DNA of 64,000 nt, from NCBI RefSeq assembly GCF_023055435.1, contig NW_025964223.1:44702001-44766000 (forward strand). The letters are read 5' to 3'. The notes below the pieces were generated by a model that was given only the letters and a program-made list of their open reading frames with translations, was not told where the DNA came from and ran no database searches. The stretch's first letter is position 1. The number at the start of each line of letters is the position of its first letter. Both the position numbers and the translations under genes were made by a program. Shown piece after piece: positions 4,901-63,972 of the stretch. The stretch comes from Haliotis rufescens. Its lineage: Eukaryota.

Positions 4901-5737
4901 TATTGAATATCAAATGTTGAATATGTACACGATATCAACTCCGTTAATGTTACACTTGAGTTAAATGTTTTGAAATCTTGGTGTCTTTCAGCAACAATGT
5001 CTTATGCGTGGATCGGCATTGGCTGCTATTGAGACTGCTGAAGAAAATGCATTCATAACTGGCTATCTGAAGGTGTTTGGCGGTAATAACTAACCTACAC
5101 ATACATTAATGTACACTATATAGTTTACGTTGTTATGACACTTCATATTGGTTAGGTGAGGGACTGACTGCTAATTAAAGTGCAATTCTGTTTGTGCAAG
5201 CCATTGTTTCTACATAATACCATAGATTTGTTACATGGTTGGTTCTTACTACATCCGCAGATATTGGTGCCAATATGCAGACGTGGATAGGTGGCAGTGA
5301 CGTAGAGATAGAGGGAATATGGAAGTGGGCCTCGAGTGGAGAACGTGTGACATACACTAACTGGGCACCCACCGAGCCCGACGAAACTGGAGACTGTATG
5401 GTCATATGGCCAGCCGGTGGCTACAACTACAGATGGGCAGATTATCCGTGCCACAGCCTAGCAAAGTTCATCTGCGAAAAAAAGTATGATTTGATGCTGA
5501 TATTGCACTCATTGAGATTGTTCCTCAAGTACACTACACTATTATCATGGAGCGATGCAATCATTTAGTTCCTAGATTGCCTTTTCAATATCATGGACTC
5601 ATATATCATGTATTGTCAATTTATAATAGTTCAGGGCGACATATATCGCCAATTTGAAGACTTTATTTTATGGAATAAGATGGTAAAATCATGGTCCTTT
5701 AATTTTCAGGATAACAGCCGGAAGTCTTGTTGGATAA
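1984..5737 (+). CDS. Secreted perlucin-like C-type lectin, copy A1 (about 158 aa, EPD/WAD)
   Basis: Exons 1984-2032 (signal MLLYILLLLLHTKCIEG), 3861-3946 (NCCPDAWIRYGNSCY), 4992-5082 (QQC..LAAIETAEEN.FI), 5261-5483 (WIGGSD..EGIWKW..YTNW..EPD..DC..WADYPC..FICEK), 5710-5737 (KITAGSLVG*). All introns GT-AG with compatible phases (1,0,1,2); 477 nt open frame; AATAAA at 5786. Confidence 0.9.
2303..2573 (-). mobile_element. SINE-like element with non-tRNA head and (AACC)n tail
   Basis: 10-bp TSD ataactgtga (2293-2302 / 2574-2583); near-identical to the copy at 52067-52331. Confidence 0.85.
3023..3300 (-). mobile_element. tRNA-derived SINE, second family, (ACTC)n tail
   Basis: Minus strand has an A-box-like agtcgtctaaggcg, B-box gggttcgaatccc and the shared tail tggaatactgttaaaagcggcgttaaac followed by (actc)n. 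Confidence 0.7.
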
Positions 5738-18559: not shown

Positions 18560-19506
18560 ACCCTCCAATTATGTCACAATGTGGGTTGCATTATCTTGTC
18601 AGGTGTGCTGTGAAGGATTGCTTGAAATGAACCATTTTGGTGGTTACTTGTGTATCATAAATGTATATGATTGTGTATATATATTGACATCAAATGTTTT
18701 ACATGTACACAATATCATCCCAGGTACACTTGTGATCAGTGTTGTATAATCTTAACTTATTTCAGCAACAATGTGTGGCGCGTGGAGCGGTACTAGCAGC
18801 TATCGAGACTGCCGAAGAAAATGCATTCATACAAGGCTATCTGAAGGTGTTTGGAGGTAATAATTAACGTGCACATGCATGAATGTACACTTTATATTTT
18901 ACGTTTTACGTCTATTTTTTTTAGATGAGGCGTGACTGCAAAATCGAGTACAGTTTCTTTTGTGTTTCATTTCATTTGTAATAAATTGTTTCAACATGAT
19001 ACTACAGATTATGCACATGGTTGGTTTTTATTGCACACGCAGATATTGGTGCCAATATGCAGACGTGGATAGGTGGCACTGACATGGAGATAGAGGGAAT
19101 ATGGAAGTGGGCCCCGAGTGGAGAACGTGTGTCATACACTGACTGGGGATCCGGCGAGCCACAAGGTTGTGCAACCTGTGGAGACTGCCTGGCCATATGG
19201 CCCGGCTACAATTACAAATGGGCCGATTACCCTTGCCCCTCTCGCGAGAAGTTCATCTGCGAAAATAAGTATGATTTGATGGTGATATTCCCTTTTTTGA
19301 GTTTGTTCCGCGAGTACACTATACAATTATCAGGAATCAGTTTCTTTCTAGATTGCATTTTGACTATCATGGACTCACATATATGTTTTGTCAATTTATA
19401 ATTGTCCAAGGCTACATATATCGCCAATCGATACCTTATGTCACTCTGTCAGATGCATAATATTCCTTTAAATTTCAGGATTACAGACGGAAGCCTTGTT
19501 GGATAA
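14633..19506 (+). CDS. Secreted perlucin-like C-type lectin, copy A2 (about 159 aa, EPQ/WAD)
   Basis: Exons 14633-14681 (MLVFIFLLLLQTGDIEG), 16754-16839, 18766-18856, 19043-19268 (EPQGCATCGDC..WADYPC..FICEN), 19479-19506 (KITDGSLVG*). 480 nt open frame, GT-AG introns. Confidence 0.9.
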
Positions 19507-44335: not shown

Positions 44336-44558
44336 NNNNNNNNNNNNNNNNNNNNNNNNNNNNNNNNNNNNNNNNNNNNNNNNNNNNNNNNNNNNNNNNN
44401 NNNNNNNNNNNNNNNNNNNNNNNNNNNNNNNNNNNNNNNNNNNNNNNNNNNNNNNNNNNNNNNNNNNNNNNNNNNNNNNNNNNNNNNNNNNNNNNNNNNN
44501 NNNNNNNNNNNNNNNNNNNNNNNNNNNNNNNNNNNNNNNNNNNNNNNNNNNNNNNNNN
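44336..44558. other. Assembly gap (223 N)
   Basis: Run of N; 44245-44333 is repeated at about 44737-44828 across the gap. Confidence 1.
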
Positions 44559-45500: not shown

Positions 45501-48500
45501 ATGGATACAGGGCTTACGACAGCGCTTTTGTTGTGTTTATTGTTGTCACACTGCTTCGTCATACAAGGTAAGGAAATTGTATGTTGAAATGAGGAAAGAA
45601 AACCATTAACTTGAGACACAAAACTGTACCACTTATGCACGATGACCTTAACATGAATATATTCATCCAAATATCAAGTTTGAGAGAATACATAGTAGAA
45701 CGTTTTTCACGTTAGTGGGACATGTACCCCTGCTTTCAGCAGTGTTGATTTATATCTCTATAACATGATATCAATGTGAGTGTGTCGTCACCCTGTCTTC
45801 AGCAGTGATGATTCAAAATAATATATAATATGATATCATATAAGTGTGTCTTCACCCTGTCGTCAGCAGTGATGATTCATATATCTATAATATGATATCA
45901 TATAAGTGTGTCTTCACCCTGTCAACAGCAGTGTTGATTCATATATTTATGATATGATATAACGTGAGTGGAACTTAACCCTGTCTTCAGCAGTGTTGAT
46001 TCATATATCTATAATATGATATCATATAAGTGTATCTTCACCCTGTCAAGAGCAGTGTTGATTCATATATTTATTATATGATATAACGTGAGTGGGACTT
46101 AACCCTGCCTTCAGCAGTGATGATTCCTATATCTATAATATGATATCATATAAGTGTGTCTTCACCCTTTCAACAGCAGTGTTGATTCATATATTTATGA
46201 TATGATATAATATAAGTTGGGCTTAACCCTGTCTTCAGCAGTGTTGATTCATATATCTATAATATGATATCATATAAGTGTGTCTTCACCCTGTCAACAG
46301 CAGTGTTGATTCATATATTTATGATATGATATAACGTGAGTGGAACTTAACCCTGTCTTCAGCAGTGTTTTTATTCATATATCTATAATATGATATCATA
46401 TAAGTGTGTCTTCACCCTGTCAACAGCAGTGTTGATTCATATATTTATGATATGATATAACGTGAGTGGCACTGAACCCTGTCTTCAGTGTTGATTCATA
46501 TATTTATGATATGATATCATGTAAGTGGCACTGAACCCTGTCTTCAGCAGTGTTGATTCATATATTTATGATATGATATCATGTAAGTAGGACTGAACCC
46601 TGTCTTCAACAGTGTTGATTTATATATTTATGATATGATATCATATAAGTTGGACTAAACCCTGTCTTCAGCAGTGTTGATTCATATATTTATGATATGA
46701 TATCATATAAGTTGGACTAAACCCTGTCTTCAGCAGTGTTGATTCATATATTTATGATATGATATAACTTGAGTGAGACTTAACCCTGTCTTCAGCAGTG
46801 TTTATTCCTATATCTATAATATGATAGCATATAAGTGTGTCTTAACCCTGTCTTCAGTGTTGATTCATATATTTATGATATGATATCATGTAAGTGGCAC
46901 TGAACCCTGTCTTCAGCACTGTTGATTCATATATTTATGATATGATATCATGTAAGCAGGACTGAACCCTGTCTTCAGCAGTGTTGATTCATATATTTAT
47001 GATATGATATCATATATAAGTTGGACTAAACCCTGTCTTCAACAGTGTTGATTTATATATTTATGATATGATATCATATAAGTTGGACTAAACCCTGTCT
47101 TCAGCAGTGTTGATTCATATATTTATGATATGATATCATATAAGTTGGACTTAACCCTGTCTTCAGCAGTGTTGATTCATATATTTATGATATGATATAA
47201 CTTGAGTGAGACTTAACCCTGTCTTCAGCAGTGTTCGTTCATATATTTCTAATAAGATATCATGTGATGTGATGCAGGTTTAGGAACTTTATCTCTTTGG
47301 TTATACCCGCGAGCATGGGTATGATGCTCACAAACGAATTTAGATAATAATCAGGGCCACGCCTAAAAGTGTTGTTTTCGTGCATATATTCCGTTTGACG
47401 AGTAATCCCAAGTCTACGCAGCAAAGCGATTCACATTGTTATTGTCATCACATTTAAAGGATGTATGTAAAATCGATATTCATTTGTAGTAGACAAGTAC
47501 TGGTAGCGTTAATTCGTTATGATGGAATATTATCCTCTTCTGTTTGTGTAGGACAGGTGTGCCGACCTGACCCGGGTGATAAAGGTAACTTTTGATCAAT
47601 ACGTGACCTTGCCTTTAAGACATAGTATATTGTGTTTAATGTATCACACAGTCTAGCCGGAATAACGGCTGCTCTAAATCATATTGTCTTTCCTTATTTT
47701 TGCTAAAAATACATATAATTCAAATTTACTGCTACAACTCTTTTTAAGACAGTGTACAAATACTGTTATCGATCGATGCAGGAAGACACTAACTTGATTG
47801 GGACGGGGAAATAACTGGGACTTGATTTGTGTCCTGTCCTTAATTCACAATCGGTGCTGTTGGTTTGTTGCTCTGTTATAATGCTACAATCGGCAATATG
47901 TCAGCTATATGACGACCGTCTTAACGTAATCCAGTGACTGACACCAAGAACATTTATACACGCAGTTGGAATAAGATGACATACAATAAACCACGTCACC
48001 GAGCCTTGCCACCCTATCCATTTAGTCGCCTCCTACGAACCACATATGCTGCACCGCTAATATAAATTCCACGTTATTCTTATCCCGAGTCCCAACGGGG
48101 GATATTGGAACATATAGGACATTCCATGCTTTACCGTTTTGCAAACACCTCATTAACATGTACTATAATTCGTGAGTATTAGACGTTTGATTTCCTCCCA
48201 TAAAGACTTCCGAACATAAATACCCCTACAGCATTCAATTTTGTCAATTTGAATATTAATACATATCCAAAGTAGAAAAACGTGTCAAAGAATGTGGTTT
48301 TATTCTAATTCTTTATGTATTTCTTTTTTAAAGTTGTCAACATGTGCGAGAACTCCTTCAGTAACGGTAACTCCCTCTATCTGGACACGGCAAGAGCTGT
48401 CAATTATCAAGACAGCTGTATGTGTTGGCTCCAGTCGCAAGGTGGCTCTGTTGAACTCCTGTTATCCGTGCGGGGAAATGAAACTGACTGTGATTCTACT

Positions 48501-51500
48501 CTGTTGCTATCACCACACATTGAGTACTCGTTTAGTTGTGTCGGTAAAGAGCCGATTACTGCCACAGGGAAAATAGAGCCTGGCCAGGTCGTCTTTATTT
48601 CTCTCACAAAATCATCCACTGACGCTAAAGCGGCGTTGTGCGTGCACATAGGGCAACTATCGTTTGGAGGTGAGTGAGAGAGTAAATGTTTATGACGCCG
48701 AAAACATACATATTCCAGGTATGTCACGGCGGTATGTAAACAATCCAGTTCGGGAAGGCGCACCAGTGACTGAAAGAAGAATGTATGAATACCTATTTGC
48801 GTCTGTGTATGAACAAAAATATGCATTAGTTCATGAACAACTATATGCGGCAGTGTATGAACGACTACATGCGGTAATATTTGGACATCTATATGCCAAA
48901 TTGTTTGATAGGCATTACTTAGAAGTTGACGGATGACAAGGTAGACACAATTTTATAGATAACAACGTCTTAGAAGTTGACGGATGACCATTGTTGTATC
49001 TATGCCCAATAGAGTGTGGACATCTATACCCAGAAGAGTGTAGACATCTATACCCAGTAGTGTGTAGACATCTATACCCAGTGTTGTGTGGACATCTATA
49101 CCCAGTAGAGTATAGACATCTATACCCAATAGTGTGTAGACATCTATACCCAGTGTTGTGTGGACATATATACCCAGTAGAGCATAGGCATCTATACCCA
49201 ATAGTGTGTGGACATCTATACCCAGTAGAGTGTAAACGTCTATACCCAATAGAGTGTGGACATCTATACCAATTGTTGTATGGACATCTATACCCAGTGT
49301 TGTGTGTGTAGCTATACCCAGGAGAGTGCAGACATCTATACCAAATAGAGCGTGGACATCTATACCCAGTTTTGTATGGACATATATACCATGTAGAGCG
49401 TGTACATATGTACCCATTGTTGTATGGACATCTTTTCCCAGTAGAGTGTAGACATCTATACCCAATAGAGTGTAGACATCTATACCCAATAGAGCGTGGA
49501 CATCTATACCCAGTTGTTGTATGGACATCTATACCAAGTAGAGCGTGGATATATGTGCCCATTGTTGTATGGCCATCTACAACCAGTAGAGTGTAGACAT
49601 CTATACCCAGTAGAGTGTAGACATCTATACCCAGTAGTGTGTAGACATCTATACCCAGTAGAGTGTAGACATCTATACCCAATATAGCGTGGACATCTAT
49701 ACCCAATATAGTGTAGACATCTATACCCAGTAGAGTGTAGACATCTATACCCAGTAGTGTGTAGACATCTATACCCAATAGTGTGTGGACATCTATACCC
49801 AGTAGAGTATAGACATATATACCATGTAGAGCGTGGACATATGTACCCATTGTTGTATGGACATCTTTTCCCAGTAGAGTGTAGACATCTATACCCAATA
49901 GAGCATGGACATCTACATGTATACCCAGTAGAGTGTAGACATCTATACCCAGTAGTGTGTAGGCATCTATACCCAATACTGTGTGGACATTTATACCAAG
50001 TAGAGTATAGACATCTTTACCCAGTAGTGTGAAGACATCTATACCCAGTAGTGTGTAGGCATCTATACCCAATAGTGTGTGGACATTTATACCCAGTAGA
50101 GTATAGACATCTTTACCCAATAATGTGTGGACATCTATACCCAGTAGAGTATAGACATCTATACCCAATAATGTGTGGACATCTATACCCAGTAGAGTGC
50201 AAACGTCTTTACCCAATAGAGCGTGGACATCTATACAAATTGTTGTATGGACATCTATACCCAGTGTTGTATGTGTATCTATACCCAGTAGAGTGTAGAC
50301 ATCTTTACCCAGTAGTGTGTAGACATCTATACCCAATAGTATGTGGACATCTATACCCAACAGAGTATAGACATCTATACCCAGTAGTGTGTAGACATTT
50401 ATACCCAGTGTTGTGTGGACATCTATACCCAGTAGAGTATAGACATCTATACCCAATAGTGTGGGGACATCTATACCAATTGTTGTGTGGACATCTATAC
50501 CCAGTAGTGTGTAGACATCTATACCCAATAGTGTGTGGAAATCTATACCCAGTAGAGTATAGACATCTATACCCAGTAGTTTGTAGACATCTATACCTTG
50601 TGTTGTGTTGACATATACCCAGTAGAGTGCAAACGTCTATACCCAATAGAGTGTGGACATCTATACCAATTGTTGTATGGACATCTATACCCAGTGTTGT
50701 ATGTGTATCTATACCCAGTAGAGTGTAGACATCTTTACCCAGTAGTGTGTAGACATCTATACCCAATAGTATGTGGACATCTATACCCAGCAGAGTATAG
50801 ACATCTATACCCAGTAGTGTGTAGACATTTATACCCAGTGTTGTGTGGACATCTATACCCAGTAGAGTATAGACATCTATACCCAATAGTGTGGGGACAT
50901 CTATACCAATTGTTGTGTGGACATCTATACCCAGTAGTGTGTAGACATCTATACCCAATAGTGTGTGGAAATCTATACCCAGTAGAGTATAGACATCTAT
51001 ACCCAGTAGTGTGTAGACATCTATACCTTGTGTTGTGTGGACATATACCCAGTAGAGTGCAAACGTCTATACCCAATAGAGTGTGTAGACATCTATACCA
51101 ATTGTTGTATGGACATCTATACCCAGTAGAGTGGAGACATCTATACCCAGCGTTGTGTGGACATCCATATCCATGCAGTGTGTGGACATCTACACCAAGT
51201 AGTGTGTGGAGCATCCATTTCTGAGCATGTCTCTTGTGGTGATATACAGAGGTTAAGTGATAACATGATTACAGAGATATATGTAACGTGACATATCCTT
51301 CCCTGGTGAAACAAATATAGTATGTGTACAAGTAATTAATAATATAGGTACTGTTTTTTTCTGGAAATTCAAATAGGAACTGTAAGTTCCCATGATCCCC
51401 ATTATTGTAGCCTAGCTTTGTTTGCTGGTGCCCTTTATCAACAGATATTTCACAATAAGTACATTGTTTTCATCGCTATGTGGCTGCAATATTGTGGATG

Positions 51501-54500
51501 CGGATTTTACTAGCTCACTCTGGAAACTTCTGAATGACCATCAAAATGTTCGTCTATTTATTATTTCATCTTTGGTCTGTTTGCAGGATCTCTCAGTTTG
51601 AACTGCTATGCGGGGACCTTGAAACCATCAACAACCACTTCTGTTCCAGTAACTACGCCGACGCCGACTCCGCCTCCAACTACAAGGCCTAGTACACAAA
51701 CTGTCAGCAGGGGTCTGGTGCCTCCTAATACAGGTATGCATCTTCAAGTCTATGGCCATATTATCACAAAGATTCGTTGCCTCTTTAATAACGTTAACCC
51801 CCTCGTATTCATAACCATTTGGTTTGAACCAGGGATTGAACACTTTCCAATCCAAACCATTAAGCTTAACCGAAACGTAAAAGACACCACAGCCGTTGAT
51901 CTTCCTTCTCATGACTGATAAGCATTTTGTTATAACGATATGTACAATTACATGCATAATTGTGATTTCAACAGCATATGTGAAGCACCACTTTATGGTC
52001 CGAAACACAACAGCAATCGACAAACTGAATGACTATATGAAACGTTAAGGGACAACAGAGTATTTGTTTGTTTGTTTGTTGTTTAACGCCGGACTCAGCA
52101 ATATTCCAGCTATATGACGGCGGTCTGTAAATAATCGAGTCTGGACCAGACAATCCACTGATTGACAGCATGAGCATCCATCCATGCAATTTGGATCGAT
52201 GACATGTATCAACCAAGTCAGCTAGCCTGACCACCCGATCCCGTTAGTCGCCTTTTACGACAAGCATAGTCGCCTTTTACGGCAAGTATGGGTTGCTGAA
52301 GACCTATTCTACCCCGGAATCTTCACGGGTCATAGTATTTGTAATTTGTCGCTTTCTATATCCGACAGGGACATCGTGCAATGCAGAACTTAACTTTGCT
52401 TCAGGCGCTGTCAGTGCCTGTCATATATGCGTGTAAAGTATGATGAAGCGCCACATTTTGCTTTAAACATAGTTTCCCGGTTCCAAGTTCAATTCAGCGC
52501 GTATGCGTCTTCAGGTCACCTACATGTTGAGATCTACATTGAAAATAAATGTTCATCACCTGAGCAGACGCACGAAAATGACTAAAATACAGCCTTGAAA
52601 CATAAAATAGAACATTACAGACTGTCAGCCAATCGGCCAGTTCTGAACCAGTGTGAATGTTAAATAATGTTGTATACAGGAGATATCTGTTTCAGCCAAC
52701 ATCTGCTCAGAGGACCCCAATGACAAAGGTATGTTGATGCAACCTCCTCATCCAGACGTTTTGTTTGTTTGTGTGTTGTAAAACGTCAAAAATAGCAATA
52801 TTCCCGCGATATAACGGCGGTCTGTAGATAATTTGATCAGTACCAAACAATCCAGTGATTGACGTCATGAGTATCGAACTACGCATTTGAGATACGATGA
52901 CATGCATCAACCAAGTTAGCGAGCCTGACCACCCGATTCCGTTAGACGCCTCTAACGACAAGCATAGCCGCCTCTTAAGGCAAGCATAGGTTGCTAAAGA
53001 CATATTCTATGTCGGATTATTATGTAAGTCAGAATTCAGAATTCAGAAGCACTCCGGTGTATATACGTACATCATTGTCCTATCATGTTATTCCAGACCT
53101 CGTGTGATATACTGGTGATAATCTTTTCATAATGTTTGTCATGGGCAACCGAGTGGTTTAGGGCACCGCATTTCCACGTGATCCCTTATGTGCAACGTTG
53201 TTATAACGTTGTGAAATAACGTTGCACGTTCACGTGATAATAACGTTGTGACAATGTTATATCACGACGTTACCAATCCACAACCTTTCCCCAACGCTGT
53301 GACAACGTCGTGTGTTAGCTGGGTTACACGCACCATTTCGATTCCGTTGTTGGAATGACTTGTGCCATTTCATTTTCACAACATTAACATCGAATGTCAT
53401 TGTATAAATGAAAACGGGGCAGTCCAACTCAATGGTTGGGTAAAATTCTGTAACCAGGCCACATTGGGTAATGATCTGATGCTGGTGTGATGGTAATGAA
53501 ACGTATGTCTTCTAGATATCAGACAGTTAGCACTGAGAATGTTGAGTGCCTAGAGAGGTTTAAGATTAACATCTTGTGTTATGGTAGCAGTAATACAAAC
53601 ATATGTAATATATGCAACGTAGATACAATGGCTTGCATCAAATTTACATTTCAGTCATCAACATGTGTGAGCGCGACTTTGGCAGCGGTAATTCTATCTA
53701 TATGGATACAACAAAAGCTGTGAACTACCAAGGCGACTGCGTGTGTCAACTCAGGGCGCAAGGTGGAGCTGTTGATCTCGAGTTATCAGTGAAGGGTGTC
53801 CACGCCGACTGCAACGCCACCCTGTATCTAGCTCCCTTCATTGACTATACCTTTAATTGTGTACAACAGGAATCTGTTTCGACAACAGGGAAGATCGAAG
53901 TGGGCCAAACCGTTTACGTTACCCTGTCCAAGGCATCTCCTGACGCTGTAGCCGATTTGTGTGTGCACATAGTGCAAACATCGTCTGGAGGTATGGCAGC
54001 AGGAAATGATGAATGAGTGCATTACATTTTACGCCGTTTTGGACAGTATTTAAGTTATACAATGGCGATATAACGTAAACTTTACGTAACGAAAACTGAT
54101 ATTTCCATGTGACACAGGTCTAGCACGTTTGCCACTTTTGTAAAATGAATTTGCTGTGCACGGTGCCAGGAACTAAGAATCATCATCCTTGAGAATATAG
54201 CTTCTAAGCTCCAATCAGCGGATCCTGGTACGGCAACACCGTATACCAATTTCACACCCATGTCCCAGAAGACAAAATGATGCACGTGATGTATGGTTGA
54301 TGTAGATGAATAGATAGATATTATACAGTAGCAATACCAAATGGAATTAAAAATGTGATGAATATTGGAGCCATAATCACAGGCTAAATTACCGATATGG
54401 CTTCAGGTGTAACGATATAAGGCTCCGATATCAATATCCTTATAAAGCTTTAAAAACCCTTTTGAAAGGACGCAATTCCATTTGTTACTTGTACTATTTT

Positions 54501-57500
54501 ATGCGTTTCTGTGTTTGTTCAGATGAACATTTAACTTGCCTTTGCATGTGTTTGTGACGGGTGCACATGATACTCCAACCATTTCGCAAACACCGAAATT
54601 CATTCACAATGTATAGTGATTCATAAAGAGACACTCGTGATAAAGTCCGAATTGTACAATTGACTCTATTTCTAGCGACAATGTCTCGTGATTATGGAAT
54701 TGGTTTTGATGTTATCTTAAACTTAAATACGTCTAATGACATCAACAACATTGGCATATGTTATCCGTTAATGCACAAATATAACTGAAATGAGTGTGGT
54801 ATAACTTCGTTTCTTCTGAATCATTCCAGCTGGATCTCTGAGTTTGACCTGCAGTGAAGGCACACCGAAACCCACCACAACTCCCCAACCACTACCATCT
54901 ACAACCAGCCAATCTGCCAACAGTTCAGGAAGCGAAGTGGCGGCCAGTACTGCGAACATCACCACCTCTGCAGTTAATCCGCGTGGATCTGGTGAACCGC
55001 GCACAAATGATACAACTGTTTCTTTTCAAAAACCACCGGTAAAAGGTGAGTACAGATTAACAATTTAAGACAAAATAAATTTCTTTTCACTCATGTGTCC
55101 AAAATGTATTCATAAATATCAACGTTTCTACGTCTTTTAACTTGACTGCAAATTGTATTTCTCTACAGAAATCGGTTAAGTAAACTATTTTAAGTTCATA
55201 GTGAATTCTGCAAGCTACATTCTGTTATGCAGAAAGCAATGAGTAATTCCGTATATTGCGATGTTTCGTTTCATCCCCATGTTAATTTTTATCATTATTG
55301 ATGAATATTATTGGAATGAGCATCATGACAACAAACCCGTACACTTTCGTAATCAAAAACAAAACTATATTGTACTTAGTTGAGACAAAATGACGTGGAG
55401 TCTAAACTTGTTGTTGATGTTGGTTGCAGAACCTACTTGTCAAGCCACACCTGGAGATAAAGGTATGTTTGTCTGATGTACCATATTCTTATCACTTCAC
55501 AATATTTCAAGACTCACTGGTTTTAATAGTTAATTATTCATGGCACAATCAATTAAATTTAAACCAATTAAATCGCATCAATTCAAACTAAAGCTTTTCG
55601 TCTGAAGCATTGGATATAATAGAAGAGGGTTACCGAAAGAACAGAAAATTAAAGCTTCTCCCAAGGCGATACAAATGATGAAGATACATTGTTAATTATC
55701 TTCTTCTGTATGTTCGTAACATACATCGATAATCATTACCTTTCAGTTGTGAATATGTGCGAGAAAAGCTTTGGTAGTGGAGCTGCCATCTATCTGGACA
55801 CTGCAAAGGCTGTCAACTACCAAGGCAGATGTGTGTGCCAACTGAGTGCCCAGGGTGGGGATGTCGATCTCCAGTTAACAGTGCAGGGAGCCCATGCAGA
55901 CTGTGACGCTACCCTGTATTTCCCTCCGCCTATTGATTACACATATAACTGTGCAGACAGGACATCCTCAAATAGTACAGGACGGATCGAGTCAGGAAGG
56001 ATGGTTTTCCTTACTCTCACCAAAGGCTCTAAAGCTGTTGCAGATTTCTGTGTTCTCTTAGTTCAAGCATCATCAGGAGGTAACACCTTATTACATATAA
56101 CTGTTTATTACTCACCCCTGAAGAGATCACCCGTTTAGTAACAATAAGCCGGTATTAAACAGTGTGGAATACCAAGCGCGTGCTTATGAAACTGCGGGAA
56201 GTTTCACTGACAAATATTGAAAACTTTCAATATCCCTTAGCTAGTTCAATGACATTGCGTGTAGTAATGACAGATCACTGAGAGGAGCTTATGAACACTC
56301 AATGACCCTAGCGACCCTTTGCTGGGCTGACGTCACATGGCATTGTTTCGCCGGTTTGTCCTGCAACAAAATTTCACAAATAACGTTACAGGGTATTGTG
56401 ACCTGCTTGAAACTTTGTGGTGCAGAATCCCGCTCCACAAGCCGATCGTTGTGCAACGGCAGTCGTAAGTCTATGTTAAAGTGTTTGAGTTACGATCACC
56501 TTAGCACTGCGGTAACTTTGTGGAACGCCCTCCTTAATTCTAAAGTTGGGCTGTGGTATTCAATAAATACGTGTTTGATATGTTTGATGTATTATTCTGT
56601 TACACTCATTTGGGTTATGCTGTGGATCGCGTAGATGTCTGCCTATTCACACACAACAGTGAAATTTTAGAAAAAATGACATAAACGGCACGTAATAAAT
56701 AAAATACTAAAGTCGTGAATAGTTCTGGCATCTGACGAGCAAAAGCGAGTCAGATACCAGATCTAGAACTCTTCAATCGTTTCATAGAATTGAGATTACA
56801 CGGGAGCTGTTTTCTATAGTATTCTATATCTTTAAAACACGTCATACTTTCATGTTTTCTGGAAATTATTTTTTTTATTGTTCACAATGACATATTTATA
56901 TTTTTCGGTAATGGCATATCCGTACGTCACTGCTTAGACAATATTGTGTTGATGGGTCAACTTGTAATTGATTTAACATCATTTCAAAACCCGAGTGTCA
57001 TGCGATAATCACAACAATCACTAATTGTACAAATAGAGAATATTGTGCATTGTTTCTACGAAAACTGCCTCATGTCTGTCACATGTCCCAAAGATGATTC
57101 AAAAAAGAAAGATGACATTTTCATAATGATATTAATAAAAGCGACAAAACCCTTTCCATACCAGAGATATTTCTCTGTTTTGTAGCAGAATCAATTGTAC
57201 GATTCGAACTATATCATGTGTATGTTCTTTGAACTGTATTTAAGTTATGCAAGGGCGTGTCACCGTACTTATGGTGTTATGCCTATGTGACACACGTATT
57301 GGACGACTTCCCACGTTGGTGACATTGATTTGCTGGGTATGGTGCTGAGAAACTAAGAATCATAGTCGGTGGGAATATACAATTCCAATATCCAATCAGA
57401 GGATCCTGGCACGGCTAGTTGGAACGTTCCCTACGAAATGGGTCATCTGTGCCCCAGAAGACATATGGTGCACGTGATAGTATGGTTGATGCAGATGCAG

Positions 57501-60500
57501 ATACTGACACGCAAAAGAAACGCAAGTGGTTTTAAGCAAATAGGTAACAAACACGGAACCATAAATTGATACGAGATTTAGTGAAGCCTGATGGTGTTAT
57601 CAATATTGTTGTTTGCATTTTGGAAGCCCCGAGTAAAAACGCAACATAAAAAACGAAACACCAAAACGCACCATTTCAATGAATATGTGGGTATCATGAA
57701 CTCATTTCTCGCGAAATCGAAAATTCACGAACTGTCATGAACTGTAGTAGGTATAAAACTGTGGCCGATTCTTGGACCTACCACTCCTTGGTCAACAATG
57801 CCACGCCTAAATCAAATTCAGAGAAACCAGGCTATCGGATGTTTGGAAGCTGGAGAGTCTGTCCAAGATGTTGCCCCTCATTTCAACGTTAACATAACCA
57901 CACTTTACCGTCTCCTGCATCGATACAGTGCTACACAGACCACAGATGACCTTCCTCGGAGCTGTCGTCCTAGGTTCACCACATTTCGACAAGATCGGCA
58001 GATTACCCGTCAACACCAGCGACATCCGTTCCTAACTGCAAGTGAAAGTGCTCGACAGACCATAGGAACACATAATCGACACATTAGCCGGGACACTGTG
58101 ATAAGACATCTCCGTTCCAACAACCTCAAATGTCGCCGACTAGCACGTCGTCCTGTTCTCCAACCACAGCATCGACAAGCACGACTTCAGTGGGCACAGG
58201 GTCATCACAATTGGCGTCATCGTGAGTGGAGGCGTGTCTTTTTCTCTGATGAAAGTCGCTTTGTGTCTCCCATGCAGACAGAAGAGTCAGAATTTGGCGG
58301 CGTCGAGGTGATCGTTTCGCTTACAGAAACGTTGTGGAAAGGGATCTATTGGTTGGACCTAGCGTCATGATATGGGCAGGGATTGGACTTGGACTTGGAC
58401 CCATGTGCTTTCTGAGCGTTGCGCAAGGCCTGGGACACTGCGTCACTGCTCAGCGGTATATCGAGCAAGTGATCAGACCCCACGTTGTTTCATTTTTTGC
58501 ACAACATCAATAACACAATTTCCAGCAGGGACAACGCTCGTCCCCATGTTGCTAGAGCTACCATGGCCTTTCTGCAACAACACAACATCCGTGCCCTCAA
58601 CCCTGATCTGAACCCCATCCAACACTTGTGGGATGAGCTTCAAACGCGTCTGCACAATGTGCGCCCAGTCCCTACAACTGCCGATGAACTACGCACACAT
58701 CGTCTGATCCACTCAATGTACAGGAGATGTTTGGCAGTGATCACACCAGGTATTGACTGACATTTTGGGTATTGCCCAAATCTGTATAAGCCCTTAACAT
58801 TTAAAAAACAAAACAATCATGTCCTCTGCCTTTTAATCAATTAAACTGTCTTCAGTTACATTTTTTTCAATCTTGCCCTGTTTGTATTTCTTGTTTTTAC
58901 TGTTGAAAATAAATAGCATGTATATTGCATACTCGACTTGCGTTTCTTTTGTGTGTGAGTATATATATTATTTAGTATTAAAACCAATTGCGAATGAAAA
59001 AGCGTGATGAATAATGAAGCCATAAGCACATGTGTTTGTAAAGTTATCATTAGGGTTTCAAGGCTATCAATATAAGGCTATGAATAAAAACAAGTTTTTA
59101 TGGTAGCTATGTGGAGGACGCATTCCATATTGAAACTTTTATGATATGTTCCTGTGTTTGTTCAGGCGAACATTTGACTTGCCTTTGCGTGTGTTTGTGA
59201 AGAGTGCTATCGGTGGGCTCACCTTATCGCAAAGAGCTGGTATCATCATCATTACTTGATAGTGACTCAAAAACACATGCTCGTGATATAGTTGGGATTG
59301 TACAACGGACCTTTCCACTAGCAGACTTCTTGTTATTATAGAAACGATTTTCTTTGTCAATGTGTATGTTAAATTGCATCTGACCAACAAGAGTGGCGCA
59401 AAAGTATGTAATTCGTTAATGCACAGACTTTATTGAAATGATTGTGTTATGACTTCGTTCCTTCTGAATCATTCCAGCTGGATCTCTGAGTTTGACCTGC
59501 AGTGAAGGCACACCGAAACCAACCACAACTCCCCAACCACAACCATCTACAACTAGCCAATCTGCCAACAGTTCAGGAAGCGGAGTGACGGCCAGAACTG
59601 CGAACATCACCACCTCTGCAGTTAATCCAGGTGGATCTAGTGAACCGAGCACAAATGATACAAATACGACAACTGTTTCTGTTCAAAAGCCACAGGTGAT
59701 AGGTGAGTAAACAATTTTAGGACATTGAAGGACAAAATCACTTACTTCTTATACAAATAAATTTGCACAAAGTAAATACATAAATCCGTTTCGTATGGGA
59801 TTTCGTTCTGTGGTCCTGCTAGGTTAATGTATTGATATATATTATAGGATTGGACATTATGAAAAAAAAAGAAACTTAATTGGTATCGAAACTATTAGTA
59901 GTAGTGTCTAAAAGCTGTGATGTATATATATTGTTGATGTTGGTTGCAGAACCTGTTTGTCAATCCACATCTGGAGATAAAGGTATGTTTGTCTGATATT
60001 CTCTTTTAAATTAAAATTTCATATAATTTCAGAATATTTGAAAACTTGCTGAGATAGTCCTACAATAACCAAGTAAAATTAAACCAATCAAATAGCATAT
60101 ATTCAAACTAAAGCTTTTCGACTGAAGCATGGGACATAATCAAAGTGAATTACTGAAAGATCAGGAAACTAAAACTTCTCACCAAAGCGGCACAAATGGT
60201 GAAGATAGATGATTAATTATCGTCTACTTAACGTTCGGAACATTAAGTACATCGATAATCATCCCCTTTCAGTTGTGAATATGTGCGAGGGAAACTTTGA
60301 TAGTGGAGCTGCCATCTATCTGGACACTGCAAAGGCTGTCAACTACCAAGGCAGATGTGTGTGCCAACTGAGTGCCCAGGGTGGGGATGTCGATCTCCAG
60401 TTATCAGTGCAGGGAGCCCATGCAGACTGTGACGCTACCCTGTATTTCTCACCGTCCATCGATCACACCTATAACTGTGCAGACAGGACATCCTCAAATA

Positions 60501-63500
60501 CTACAGGACGGATCGAGTCAGGAAAGATGGTTTTCCTTACTCTTACCAAAGGCTCTGATGCTGTTGCAGATTTCTGTGTTCTCTTAGTTCAAACATTATC
60601 AGGAGGTAAAACAAAATTAAATGTAATATATGCGTTTTTCAGTGACAAAACAGAAGTACGTCGCAGCATAGGAAATAGTGTGTTGATTAGTCAACATGTA
60701 ATTTATTTACCACCATATAAGTACACCAATGTCATGCAATAATCATAGTCATCAGCTTTTGTGCACATATACCGTGTTGCATTGTTCCGATCAATCCCTA
60801 TGCCAAAGATGATTCCAAAGATGATTCAACAGACAAATGAAGTCCCTGATCAGAAGTAAATCGTTTCTGAAAATATCGGCTAAATCGTACATACCTATAT
60901 CGTGTAAAACAATACATCCCCCACTTCTGCATAGCAATGAATCGTGGCTATATGCAACATGAACTGTTTCTCTGGTGTTATGTTAAAATGTGCGCAAAAT
61001 CAGTGTCAATTTACATGTGTTAATGAGGTGAATATGTTAGATACAGAGATATGATTCTGCATAATTCTAGCAAAATTCTTTTCATTTATTGTGATAAAGA
61101 GATTTGACATCAATCATATAATTAGGATTGCTTCTGATCTCCAGCAGGATAACCGTATTCATTTTAAGATATATTTTTTTCTGTGCAATGTACAATTGAG
61201 ACATCAATAAATACAATATCTTTGTGTGCATGAATATAATTGATCTCTCATTTCTGAAAATTCAACGAGTGTATATTTTAGTCATGACTGCCATTAGAGA
61301 CAAAATCTCTATTCACATGTTACACGATGGGACAATCATCATTCAGCCATGTCAATGTACGGTTTTCTATCATAAAGCAAGTCATTATTGACACAGAATC
61401 TTTGGAGGCCCTATTTCCTCTCATATTTCACTTTACATGATGTGTACACTTTCTGTTTCCATGTATCTCAGGATCTCTAAGCCTAAACTGTTTGGAAGGG
61501 AAATTAAAAGTTACTGTCGTGCCCCCTACAACGACCTCCACTTTGCCCAACAGCACAGGCAGTGAGGTTACTAAAACCGGTGCCACTGTAAAGACTAACA
61601 GCTCCTCTTTACCGAAAAGCACTACCAGCCCTTCTGTACCGACAAACACCACCGATGGGGGAAACGGTACCATCAAGGATCCGCAACAGGCGCCCTTAGA
61701 ACAATCTCCTGCCCATTCTACGATTGTTGGTAAGGATTCTTAAGCATTTGTGAATGATCGTCATTGTCACCTTTGACAATTTGATTGGCTGCGTCACTGA
61801 CAAATTTTCAAGAGGCAGTCAATCCTCATGAACGCTAATCAGGAAGTGTTTACCGCTGATATATAAATGGGTTAATGGTATTACATTAAATGTAATATAA
61901 TATGGGCATTTGAATGTTGTTATGATAAGGTTTTGGTATTGGTAAGTTCCACACAGTATGTTTTTAATGTGAATCGAATAGTTTCAGATTTCGTGGAAGA
62001 ATGTAAACTGCCATGCATCAGAAAGTATACACACTTGTTTAATGGGGACTAAAACAAGAAATTGTGATGTATTTGATACGAGTATCATGGTTGTGTTTTG
62101 GACCTTAAGTTTCCTCTATTTCGGCGACTGTTTTCAGCTCAGTATGTTTTGACAACGTTTGTATTTATTGGTTAAATATAATTTTCCAGTGTATACTTTC
62201 TTTGGCCTCACAGTTTATATTTCATGACAAAACACCGTTTGCATTGTTATTTTTTTTAATATCTCAGTTGCACATCAATACTGATATGAGTTGGCGTACG
62301 ACGGGTGATTAACAGAATATTGCCGAATATTGAAATCTTGTGTACTGGACATTACATGGCGTCAAAAAGGTATATCATCCATAAGAAATTGAGTCAAGTG
62401 AGCTAATTGTTTCGCATTGACAAGTCAGTGTAATAAGCAGCGATCAGCTACTTTTCGAAAATGGACAAACTTGAGGAGCGTGCAGTGACCAAGTGCTTAC
62501 AGATAAAATGGCAAGCACCAACAGCTATCCATGAATATATGAGTACAACAGGAGGGAATGATGCCCCTTCCGTGCCACTGTAAGAAGTTTAAGCCTGTCA
62601 GAGATCGCCTAAAAACGACCCCCGTCCTGGAACTTGTCACGTCAGCAACACCTGAAAAGATCAAGAGAATCCACTGTATAGTGATGGCCGACCGGCGTCT
62701 GAGTAAGCGTCATATTGCCATATTGCCATATAAGGCAAAGACTGTCCTGTCAGCAAGACAGATCATGGCATCCGTGTTCTGGGATGTCGGCGATGTCATC
62801 ACGGTGGACCATCTTCCTAAAGACCAGACATGAAACGTGCACAAATCATGATCAGTGATGGCCATAGTGTTTAAAATGCATGCGTGTCGCTTTGAAGATT
62901 AGTCATTCAGCAGCACCTCCTTTCCTTCAGACCAAGTTACCAAAACATGAGGAAAGCTCCAGCCGAAACCCATTTCGACTTGAAAGAAGACGTTATGCCA
63001 GATGTGGGGAACTTTGTGGAGAGCCAAGAGAAAGAATTCCACTCAACTTGGATAAAATCTCTCCAACATTGTTGGCAAACGTGTACCAGTCTGGAAGTGG
63101 ATTGTGTTAAAAAATAAATCATATTAATGTCGCAGGTCAAGTATGTCTATGTGCGGCTCAGGACACATCATTCACCCCTCGTATCATGAAGTTAACGGAT
63201 ATATACTTCAAGTGAAACATTAGAATGTAATACACAAACAAATTGCTATAGATAATATTCTTATTCGATGTCCTGAATAGTCATGACTCCCAAGATAAAC
63301 TTCATATTGTTTTTTTCAGTGAGCATTATTGTGGTAACTGCCTTTGGGATAGTTGTGCTGTTGACGATAATAATGGTCATTGCGAAACGTGTCAGGTACG
63401 ATATCTTGTCTCAAATACATTGCAGCTTGCTTGCGATTACGCATGTATGTAAGGCCCCGCATGATCATGTGTTAGTCATATTGTATTTTCCATTTTTTGT

Positions 63501-63972
63501 GACATCATGGTACGATGATTTATATTTTTAACTAATGTGCAGACATATAATATATGAGTGATTGTGTAAACGGTATGCAAATATATAACGTCAATAATCG
63601 AAACAGATTCCATTGGGCGTATAATTTAAAAAAGAAATTATATGAATGAATCACTAAAAATCAGGGTAAGAGGGTAAGTATGTCCTGCACTTCCGGTAAC
63701 AATCAGCAATACTAAGGCTATGTTTCCATGGCCTGAAGACCCGCCAAACCAGTGACTGAAAGGGAACTGAGCAATTAACCAGTCTGTTGGAGTTACATGC
63801 CGGAAAGTCGGCCAAATCACAGCCTCACGAGTCGACTTGTTGTAAAAGGTGCATAAAACATCATTATATTTATTTGCGCAATGCCTTTGTCTTTCTTAGG
63901 AAAAAGTCAAGTTCCAATCAAGTGGCAGCTGCCCCAAGTTCTGCCAACGGTCTGATCAACGTCAGCCTATAA
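45501..63972 (+). CDS. Uncharacterised type I membrane glycoprotein, about 843 aa: signal peptide, 4 x (8-Cys domain + mucin-like linker), TM helix, short tail
   Basis: 15 GT-AG exons: 45501-45567 (signal MDTGLTTALLLCLLLSHCFVIQG), 47552-47584, 48334-48669, 51587-51733, 52696-52728, 53655-53990, 54830-55045, 55430-55462, 55747-56079, 59478-59702, 59950-59982, 60273-60605, 61472-61729, 63320-63395 (TM VSIIVVTAFGIVVLLTIIMVIA), 63900-63972 (..GLINVSL*). Total 2532 nt, in frame with no internal stop. Confidence 0.85.
45725..47265. repeat. 62-bp minisatellite in receptor intron 1 (about 25 units)
   Basis: Unit accctgtcttcagcagtgttgattcatatatttatgatatgatatcatataagttggactaa. Confidence 0.95.
48995..51215. 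repeat. 24-bp minisatellite in receptor intron 3 (about 90 units)
   Basis: Unit gacatctatacccagtagagtgta; produces LLGIDVYT-type pseudo-ORFs. Confidence 0.95.
52067..52331 (-). mobile_element. Full-length non-tRNA-headed SINE-like element
   Basis: 5' end GACCCGTGAAGA, (AAAC)n tail, TSD agagtatttg/atagtatttg (1 mismatch). Older copies at 52760-53015, 47860-48100, 9515-9760 and 20220-20450. Confidence 0.85.
57504..58959 (+). mobile_element. Near full-length Tc1-like transposon with frameshifted transposase (57798-about 58760)
   Basis: TIRs ctgacacgcaaaagaaacgcaagt / acttgcgtttcttttgtgtgtgag with TA on both sides; MPRL..QRNQAIG.L.AG.S...VA.HF, DDLPRS.RPR.TT.RQDR, WRRVFFSDESRF, DNARPHVAR, PDLNPIQHLWDEL. 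Confidence 0.92.
62299..63181 (+). mobile_element. Degenerate mariner-like element
   Basis: TIR ends TA-cgacgggtgatt / attcacccctcg-TA; remnants MDKLEERAV.K.L, VMADRRL, KAKTVLSA.QIMASVFWD..DVITVD.LPKDQT. Confidence 0.8.

Follow-up and report, generated by a model that had tools for sequence, protein, structure and literature searches.

A 64,000-nucleotide stretch of the red abalone (Haliotis rufescens) genome, referred to here as the window, contains between positions 45501 and 63972 an intact protein-coding gene for a predicted type I membrane glycoprotein with four copies of an eight-cysteine domain. Judged from its sequence, the domain represents a lineage-restricted and unnamed family for which Pfam has no model, and its predicted structure is a beta-sandwich of the jelly-roll type that most resembles the CUB fold. 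The protein is probably a multivalent surface binding or recognition glycoprotein, in which the domains are displayed on stalks rich in serine, threonine, and proline (S/T/P). The window is located on a 63-Mb chromosome-scale contig of the 1.33-Gb genome.

Structure of the gene and architecture of the protein

Three-frame translation of the plus strand at 45501–63972 yields four very similar open stretches of ~112 amino acids each. Before each of these cores, a short stretch terminates in [PS][GN]DK; after it, another begins with GSLSLxC and continues into an S/T/P-rich run. The RefSeq record XP_046363232.2 (here P0001), a protein of 843 residues with the automatic name "mucin-5AC-like [Haliotis rufescens]", maps onto the plus strand of the same interval as 15 exons with a coding sequence of 2532 nt. 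When each splice boundary was allowed to move by ±8 nt, GT...AG was required, and the joined translation was compared with P0001, exactly one GT-AG solution with 14 introns was obtained. It encodes all 843 residues of P0001 plus the stop codon, begins with the start codon at 45501, and ends with the stop codon at 63972. Analyses of the complete gene product were carried out on the RefSeq record. The original prediction had proposed a complete 15-exon frame with this start and end, and the unique solution reproduces it.

Introns 1–13 are in phase 1, and the last, intron 14, is in phase 2. Three exons make up each domain: exon A (33 nt) provides the first cysteine and the xGDK motif, exon B (333–336 nt) provides six cysteines and forms the core, and exon C (147–258 nt) encodes the last strand with the eighth cysteine and then the linker. 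Because phase-1 introns surround every domain exon, whole units can duplicate in frame.

P0001 starts with a signal peptide (residues 1–23), which is followed by four domains of 127–128 residues (26–153, 198–325, 393–519, and 590–716). The cysteines of all four repeats are spaced C-x11-C-x23-C-x-C-x21-C-x15-C-x32/33-C-x15/16-C, as had been predicted, and this spacing is invariant across 23 domains of 11 proteins. An alignment of the four core exons has 48 invariant columns, and cores 2–4 are 51–56% identical to that of domain 1. The repeat pattern is not a product of chance, because of this core identity and because the ortholog from H. asinina and the paralogs preserve the spacing. The predicted exon ends carry motifs that occur four times each: PGDK/PNDK/PGDK/SGDK, V[VI]NMCE, a C[VL][HL][IL][GV]Q strand, and GSLSLxC. 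The aspartate of the Y-L-D motif of the domain is near-invariant.

The linkers of P0001 have lengths of 44, 67, 70, and 78 residues, consist of 47–61% S/T/P, and are free of tandem repeats. The protein contains 16 N-x-S/T sequons, which include all seven types listed in the original prediction; the motifs and linkers described there are likewise present. The transmembrane helix lies within about residues 795–820, and the 27-residue tail (817–843) lacks tyrosine and has the C-terminus ...NGLINVxL. The helix and the length of the tail, both anticipated earlier, are supported by the sequence and by the AlphaFold2 model, and the beads-on-a-string type I membrane architecture agrees with the public gene model as well as with AlphaFold2. 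With its signal peptide, S/T/P-rich extracellular segments, single transmembrane helix, and short tail, P0001 has the attributes of a membrane-tethered mucin-like protein. With MUC5AC and other gel-forming mucins it has only the S/T/P-rich composition of the linkers in common: a Pfam scan of P0001 contains no VWD, C8, TIL, or cystine knot domain, and there is no long tandem array rich in proline, threonine, and serine (PTS). The name "mucin-5AC-like" is a composition-driven misnomer for this 843-residue transmembrane-anchored protein.

Conservation of the gene and dynamics of its repeats

The ortholog from H. asinina (P0014) has 844 residues, is 65% identical to P0001 at 98% coverage, and contains the same four domains with the same cysteine spacing. 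The domains of the two proteins are 71–84% identical and free of indels, whereas the linkers are 51–55% identical and contain indels. The tails are 77% identical, with the last 16 residues nearly unchanged. Comparisons of the older domain pairs within the gene give ratios of non-synonymous to synonymous substitution rates (dN/dS) of 0.12–0.24, with saturated dS. The ortholog, the contrast in conservation between domains and linkers, the dN/dS values, and the open exons with canonical splice sites indicate that the gene is real and constrained. Satellites and transposon remnants abound in the introns, as might be expected if the gene were a prediction artefact or a decaying pseudogene built from repeated exons; nevertheless, such an origin is highly improbable, given that 15 of 15 exons are open, one consistent solution gives GT-AG boundaries to 14 of 14 introns, H. 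asinina has a full-length ortholog of identical architecture, dN/dS is well below 1, and the domains are modelled with confidence by AlphaFold2. A word-index search with core exon B2 returned no candidate of 62–196 amino acids, and so no transcript fragments.

In the comparison of the two species, domains 1 and 2 each pair with the corresponding H. asinina domain, whereas domains 3 and 4 cluster with each other within each species, with bootstrap values of 87 and 99 for the two species groupings. Domain 3 is 87% identical to domain 4 in H. rufescens and 95% in H. asinina, compared to 76–78% between the species. The unit C2-A3-B3 is duplicated as C3-A4-B4 with its introns included (55411–56083 versus 59931–60609, and 54467–55015 versus 59115–59663). 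The DNA identity is 94% for B3/B4 and 93% for C2/C3 (dS ~0.07–0.08), and 63–80% for the flanking introns. Since the exons are far more alike than the introns, and since domains 3 and 4 group by species, the data suggest that an older tandem duplication was followed by gene conversion focused on the exons. Alternatively, domains 3 and 4 could be the product of independent duplications.

Predicted fold of the eight-cysteine domain

The repeat had not been recognized as a named Pfam domain, and this was borne out: with E-values up to 10, hmmscan against Pfam gave no match for any of the four core exons, and the matches of the whole proteins were noise. A search of the PDB by sequence also gave no match. 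Sub-threshold Pfam matches to TMEM154, UPF0669, and DUF7827 were rejected as noise, which involved transmembrane or low-complexity parts or repeat-summed scores without a single passing stretch.

The structure of the single-domain paralog P0006 was modelled by AlphaFold2 using a 19-row family alignment. The model has a predicted local distance difference test score (pLDDT) of ~90 over residues 30–155 and is composed of 11 strands and one short helix. In the AlphaFold2 model of full-length P0001, four blocks with pLDDT of 80–90 are joined by disordered linkers with pLDDT below 50 (~27–39), and the transmembrane helix is formed.

The domain model was aligned with VIA-align to 48,161 PDB representatives, and candidates from Foldseek were re-aligned in a second pass. 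The first eleven rows of the comparison to the PDB representatives are all CUB domains, with Z-scores of 6.9–7.6 and root-mean-square deviations of 2.7–3.6 Å over 97–109 residues; they include Kremen, C1s CUB2, MAP-1, spermadhesin PSP-I, MASP-1, meteorin, cubilin, and neuropilin-1. Among the re-aligned candidates, Kremen reached a Z-score of 8.0, and spermadhesin aSFP 7.9, with 106 of its 111 residues aligned. The ESM feature neighbours are CUB clusters too, which adds weak support. Foldseek alone returned weak and mixed jelly-roll matches, because the query was the whole 230-residue model including the transmembrane helix. Below the CUB structures in the ranking are the collagen-binding domains of ColG (Z 6.7–6.9) and GOLD domains (Z about 6.3–6.5).

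CUB domains (PF00431), such as those of Kremen1, aSFP, and PSP-I, CUB2 of C1s/MASP, and a2 of neuropilin, are thus the best structural matches (Z 6.9–8.0, root-mean-square deviation 2.7–3.0 Å, ~100 aligned residues). They too are extracellular beta-sandwiches of ~110–130 residues and belong to multi-domain surface proteins with phase-1 exons. In many cases the first aligned position is Cys2 of the abalone domain, which recalls the first cysteine at the beginning of a CUB domain, and the spacings Cys2–Cys3/4 (23/25) and Cys5–Cys6 (15) are reminiscent of the C1–C2 and C3–C4 pairs of CUB. The ligand-binding subset of CUB domains has a Ca2+-binding Tyr/Glu/Asp/Asp site, for which the near-invariant aspartate of the Y-L-D motif is a candidate residue. 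However, CUB domains have four conserved cysteines, whereas the abalone domain has eight, and its additional N- and C-terminal cysteine-bearing strands are encoded by separate exons. The PPC and ColG/ColH collagen-binding domains of bacteria are jelly-rolls of similar size (Z 6.0–7.4, Foldseek E ~1e-3), and the ESM Atlas offers structural neighbours of this kind with template modelling scores of ~0.54, which are leads only. Unlike the abalone domain, they are bacterial, calcium-dependent, and cysteine-free; they rank below CUB and have no sequence similarity to the abalone domain.

Probable role of the protein

The signal peptide, single transmembrane helix, and short conserved tail mark P0001 as a type I membrane protein of the secretory pathway, whose four globular modules are independent and constrained and whose linkers are unconstrained and biased in composition. 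The linkers, predicted to be heavily O- and N-glycosylated, are probably stiff and would project the modules from the membrane. The four globular modules could serve as separate, flexibly linked binding sites and so confer multivalency, and each would probably bind a protein or glycan ligand, by analogy with CUB and other jelly-roll domains. In this way, the protein may mediate recognition or adhesion at the cell surface through multivalent binding. The tail is conserved and has a hydrophobic V-x-L end; it is probably used for sorting or attachment to a scaffold rather than for kinase-type signalling, because it lacks tyrosine.

A similar plan is known from DMBT1/gp340 (salivary agglutinin), in which cysteine-rich globular repeats are joined by short O-glycosylated S/T/P spacers, and multivalent display enables pattern recognition. 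DMBT1 is secreted and is built of SRCR domains together with canonical CUB and ZP modules. The abalone protein resembles it in the domain–stalk–domain arrangement, but is anchored by a transmembrane helix and uses an unrelated eight-cysteine domain.

Several observations weigh against this picture of a recognition glycoprotein with a CUB-like fold. Z-scores of up to 8 are common for models without true relatives and fall into the generic jelly-roll range, and the scores of the PPC, GOLD, and ColG collagen-binding domains are just a little lower than those of CUB. The resemblance to CUB is purely structural: a scan of the genome with PF00431 gave at least 150 matches, none of those listed being at this locus, and hhalign assigned a probability of 2% to the relationship between the 23-domain family profile and a profile of 11 abalone CUB sequences. 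Glycosylation of the linkers is predicted from their composition only. Finally, a literature search by accession and locus name found no paper naming any member of the family. The protein had been called apparently undescribed, which holds for the literature but not for the databases, where it is already annotated as XP_046363232.2 under an uninformative automatic name. The "mucin-5AC-like" in a paper on abalone haemocytes is a generic list entry that is not attributable to this gene (PMC11250055).

The modelled domain is a jelly-roll beta-sandwich of ~110 residues that can be superposed on solved CUB structures, but Z-scores of up to 8 are not a proof of homology, and neither hmmscan, the PF00431 scan, nor hhalign places the domain in the CUB sequence family. 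Because the structure matches while the Pfam CUB model and the profile–profile comparison see no relationship, we regard the domain as CUB-like in fold, without demonstrated membership of the CUB family. Of the earlier proposal of a beta-sandwich with a possibly very divergent CUB-like fold, the fold was upheld by the AlphaFold2 model (Z 6.9–8.0 to CUB structures), and CUB homology at the sequence level was not found. "Very divergent CUB-like beta-sandwich" is the best description of the predicted fold that is available.

Alternatively, the stalks could be the functional part of a barrier or lubricating membrane mucin, which would form a glycocalyx or anti-adhesive coat, possibly shed into the mucus, with the cysteine-rich domains as mere structural spacers. 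Abalones are mucus-rich animals, the S/T/P-rich linkers of P0001 are accompanied by many sequons, and the paralog P0002 has ~13 tandem copies of a 15-residue S/T-rich unit, with long PTS regions in other paralogs. Nevertheless, we consider a barrier mucin unlikely: conservation is much stronger in the domains and the tail than in the linkers, the domains have accumulated no indels, the linkers are short (44–78 residues) and not tandemly repeated, and the Pfam scan of P0001 contains neither an SEA nor any other cleavage module.

Members and distribution of the family

The range of the family was searched in 1.84 billion representative proteins, using a profile built from the four core exons, and in a collection of 5.8 billion sequences, using a 19-row profile. 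The search of the representatives identified nine relatives, of which eight come from Haliotis sequences, with three species named, and the ninth from Gigantopelta aegis; P0001 was matched four times. In both searches together, the family is found only in H. rufescens, H. asinina, H. cracherodii, and Gigantopelta aegis, and in three Logan/ENA assembly fragments. The Gigantopelta aegis protein has an E-value of 1e-4 with the small profile. A bacterial repeat protein (P0010, E 9e-4) was discarded as spurious, as it lacks the cysteine pattern.

The genome of H. rufescens contains 15 core exons on the contig of the window, most of them within about 325 kb; the eleven outside this gene (L005–L015) form a cluster of paralogs around the window. 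The members extend from single-domain transmembrane proteins of 230–240 residues up to a protein that has four complete domains plus a partial fifth, and some contain true mucin-type tandem repeats. P0016 from H. cracherodii, whose H. rufescens counterpart is exon L015, is divergent and has a long cytoplasmic tail with the motifs YTLV and NPVY, the latter similar to an NPxY endocytic signal. Given these tyrosine motifs, some members of the family may signal or internalise.

The preferred role as a recognition glycoprotein includes the attractive special case of a gamete- or immune-recognition receptor under rapid, lineage-specific evolution. It would fit with the restriction of the family to abalones and a neomphaline snail, the position of the tandem cluster next to C-type lectin genes, the homogenization of domains 3 and 4 within each species, and the presence of spermadhesins among the best fold matches. 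The recently converted B3/B4 pair has a dN/dS of ~0.86, which is derived from only 19 substitutions, too few to prove anything. The specialized function is quite unlikely to be correct, since the older comparisons show purifying selection, and the substitution counts are too small for a claim of positive selection. We put forward only tentatively the broader scenario in which the eight-cysteine module constitutes a novel family of extracellular domains that arose in the vetigastropod/neomphaline lineage, or diverged there beyond recognition, and was expanded into clustered gamete or immune recognition receptors whose repeats are kept alike within genes by exon-limited gene conversion while diverging between species.

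Features of the locus

The exons, the repeats within the introns, and the surroundings of the gene are listed in Table 1. The 24-bp minisatellite at 48998–51215 gives rise to long spurious open reading frames on both strands.

Table 1. Features of the gene, its introns, and its surroundings (positions in the window, or in Mb on the contig where indicated)
Feature	Position	Strand	Description
Exon 1	45501..45567	+	start codon, 23-residue signal peptide, ends in phase 1; GT donor; AlphaFold2 helix 3–22
Exon A1	47552..47584	+	33 nt; first Cys of domain 1, PGDK
Exon B1	48334..48669	+	336 nt; core of domain 1, six of eight Cys; family profile match E 2.4e-59
Exon C1	51587..51733	+	147 nt; last strand of domain 1, GSLSLNC, and S/T/P linker 1
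Exon A2	52696..52728	+	33 nt; first Cys of domain 2, PNDK
Exon B2	53655..53990	+	336 nt; core of domain 2
Exon C2	54830..55045	+	216 nt; GSLSLTC and linker 2
Exon A3	55430..55462	+	33 nt; first Cys of domain 3, PGDK
Exon B3	55747..56079	+	333 nt; core of domain 3
Exon C3	59478..59702	+	225 nt; GSLSLTC and linker 3; DNA 93% identical to C2
Exon A4	59950..59982	+	33 nt; first Cys of domain 4, SGDK
Exon B4	60273..60605	+	333 nt; core of domain 4; DNA 94% identical to B3
Exon C4	61472..61729	+	258 nt; GSLSLNC and juxtamembrane S/T/P stalk
Exon 14	63320..63395	+	76 nt; transmembrane helix and KRVR stop-transfer; AlphaFold2 helix 790–828
Exon 15	63900..63972	+	rest of 27-residue cytoplasmic tail and stop codon; tail 77% identical to H. 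asinina
62-bp satellite, intron 1	45714–47263		25 copies, higher-order period 433 bp
24-bp minisatellite	48998–51215		~92 copies; most of the B1–C1 intron
Tc1-type transposase remnant, intron	57798–58760		HTH_Tnp_Tc3_2 E 8e-14
Mariner-like fragment, intron	62558–62833		partial mariner DDE, E 1e-4
C-type lectin exon, upstream	5239–5568	+	Pfam Lectin_C E 1.9e-10
C-type lectin exon, upstream	19021–19401	+	Pfam Lectin_C E 1.5e-7; extra insertion with Cys-x-x-Cys
Minisatellite, upstream	about 29–32 kb		
Tc1/mariner remnants, upstream	about 35.7–38.8 kb		
Run of 223 N	44336–44558		assembly gap or mask just upstream of the gene
Core exons, this gene			4
Core exons, contig	44.55–44.57 Mb		5; three-domain P0002 and single-domain P0015
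Divergent core exons, contig	44.78–44.87 Mb		5
Core exon, contig	47.13 Mb		1

Significance

The domain family is new and has neither a family model nor a literature, whereas its fold and the design of domains on stalks are familiar; the finding overturns nothing established. It defines an unnamed, lineage-restricted extracellular domain family with a confidently predicted fold, an exact exon anatomy, and a chromosomal cluster, and it provides a clean example of the duplication of phase-1 exon units combined with exon-focused homogenization. For the biology of abalones, it uncovers candidate surface recognition molecules behind the labels "mucin-5AC-like" and "uncharacterized", which are of relevance to aquaculture, to disease, and to Haliotis as a model of gamete recognition.

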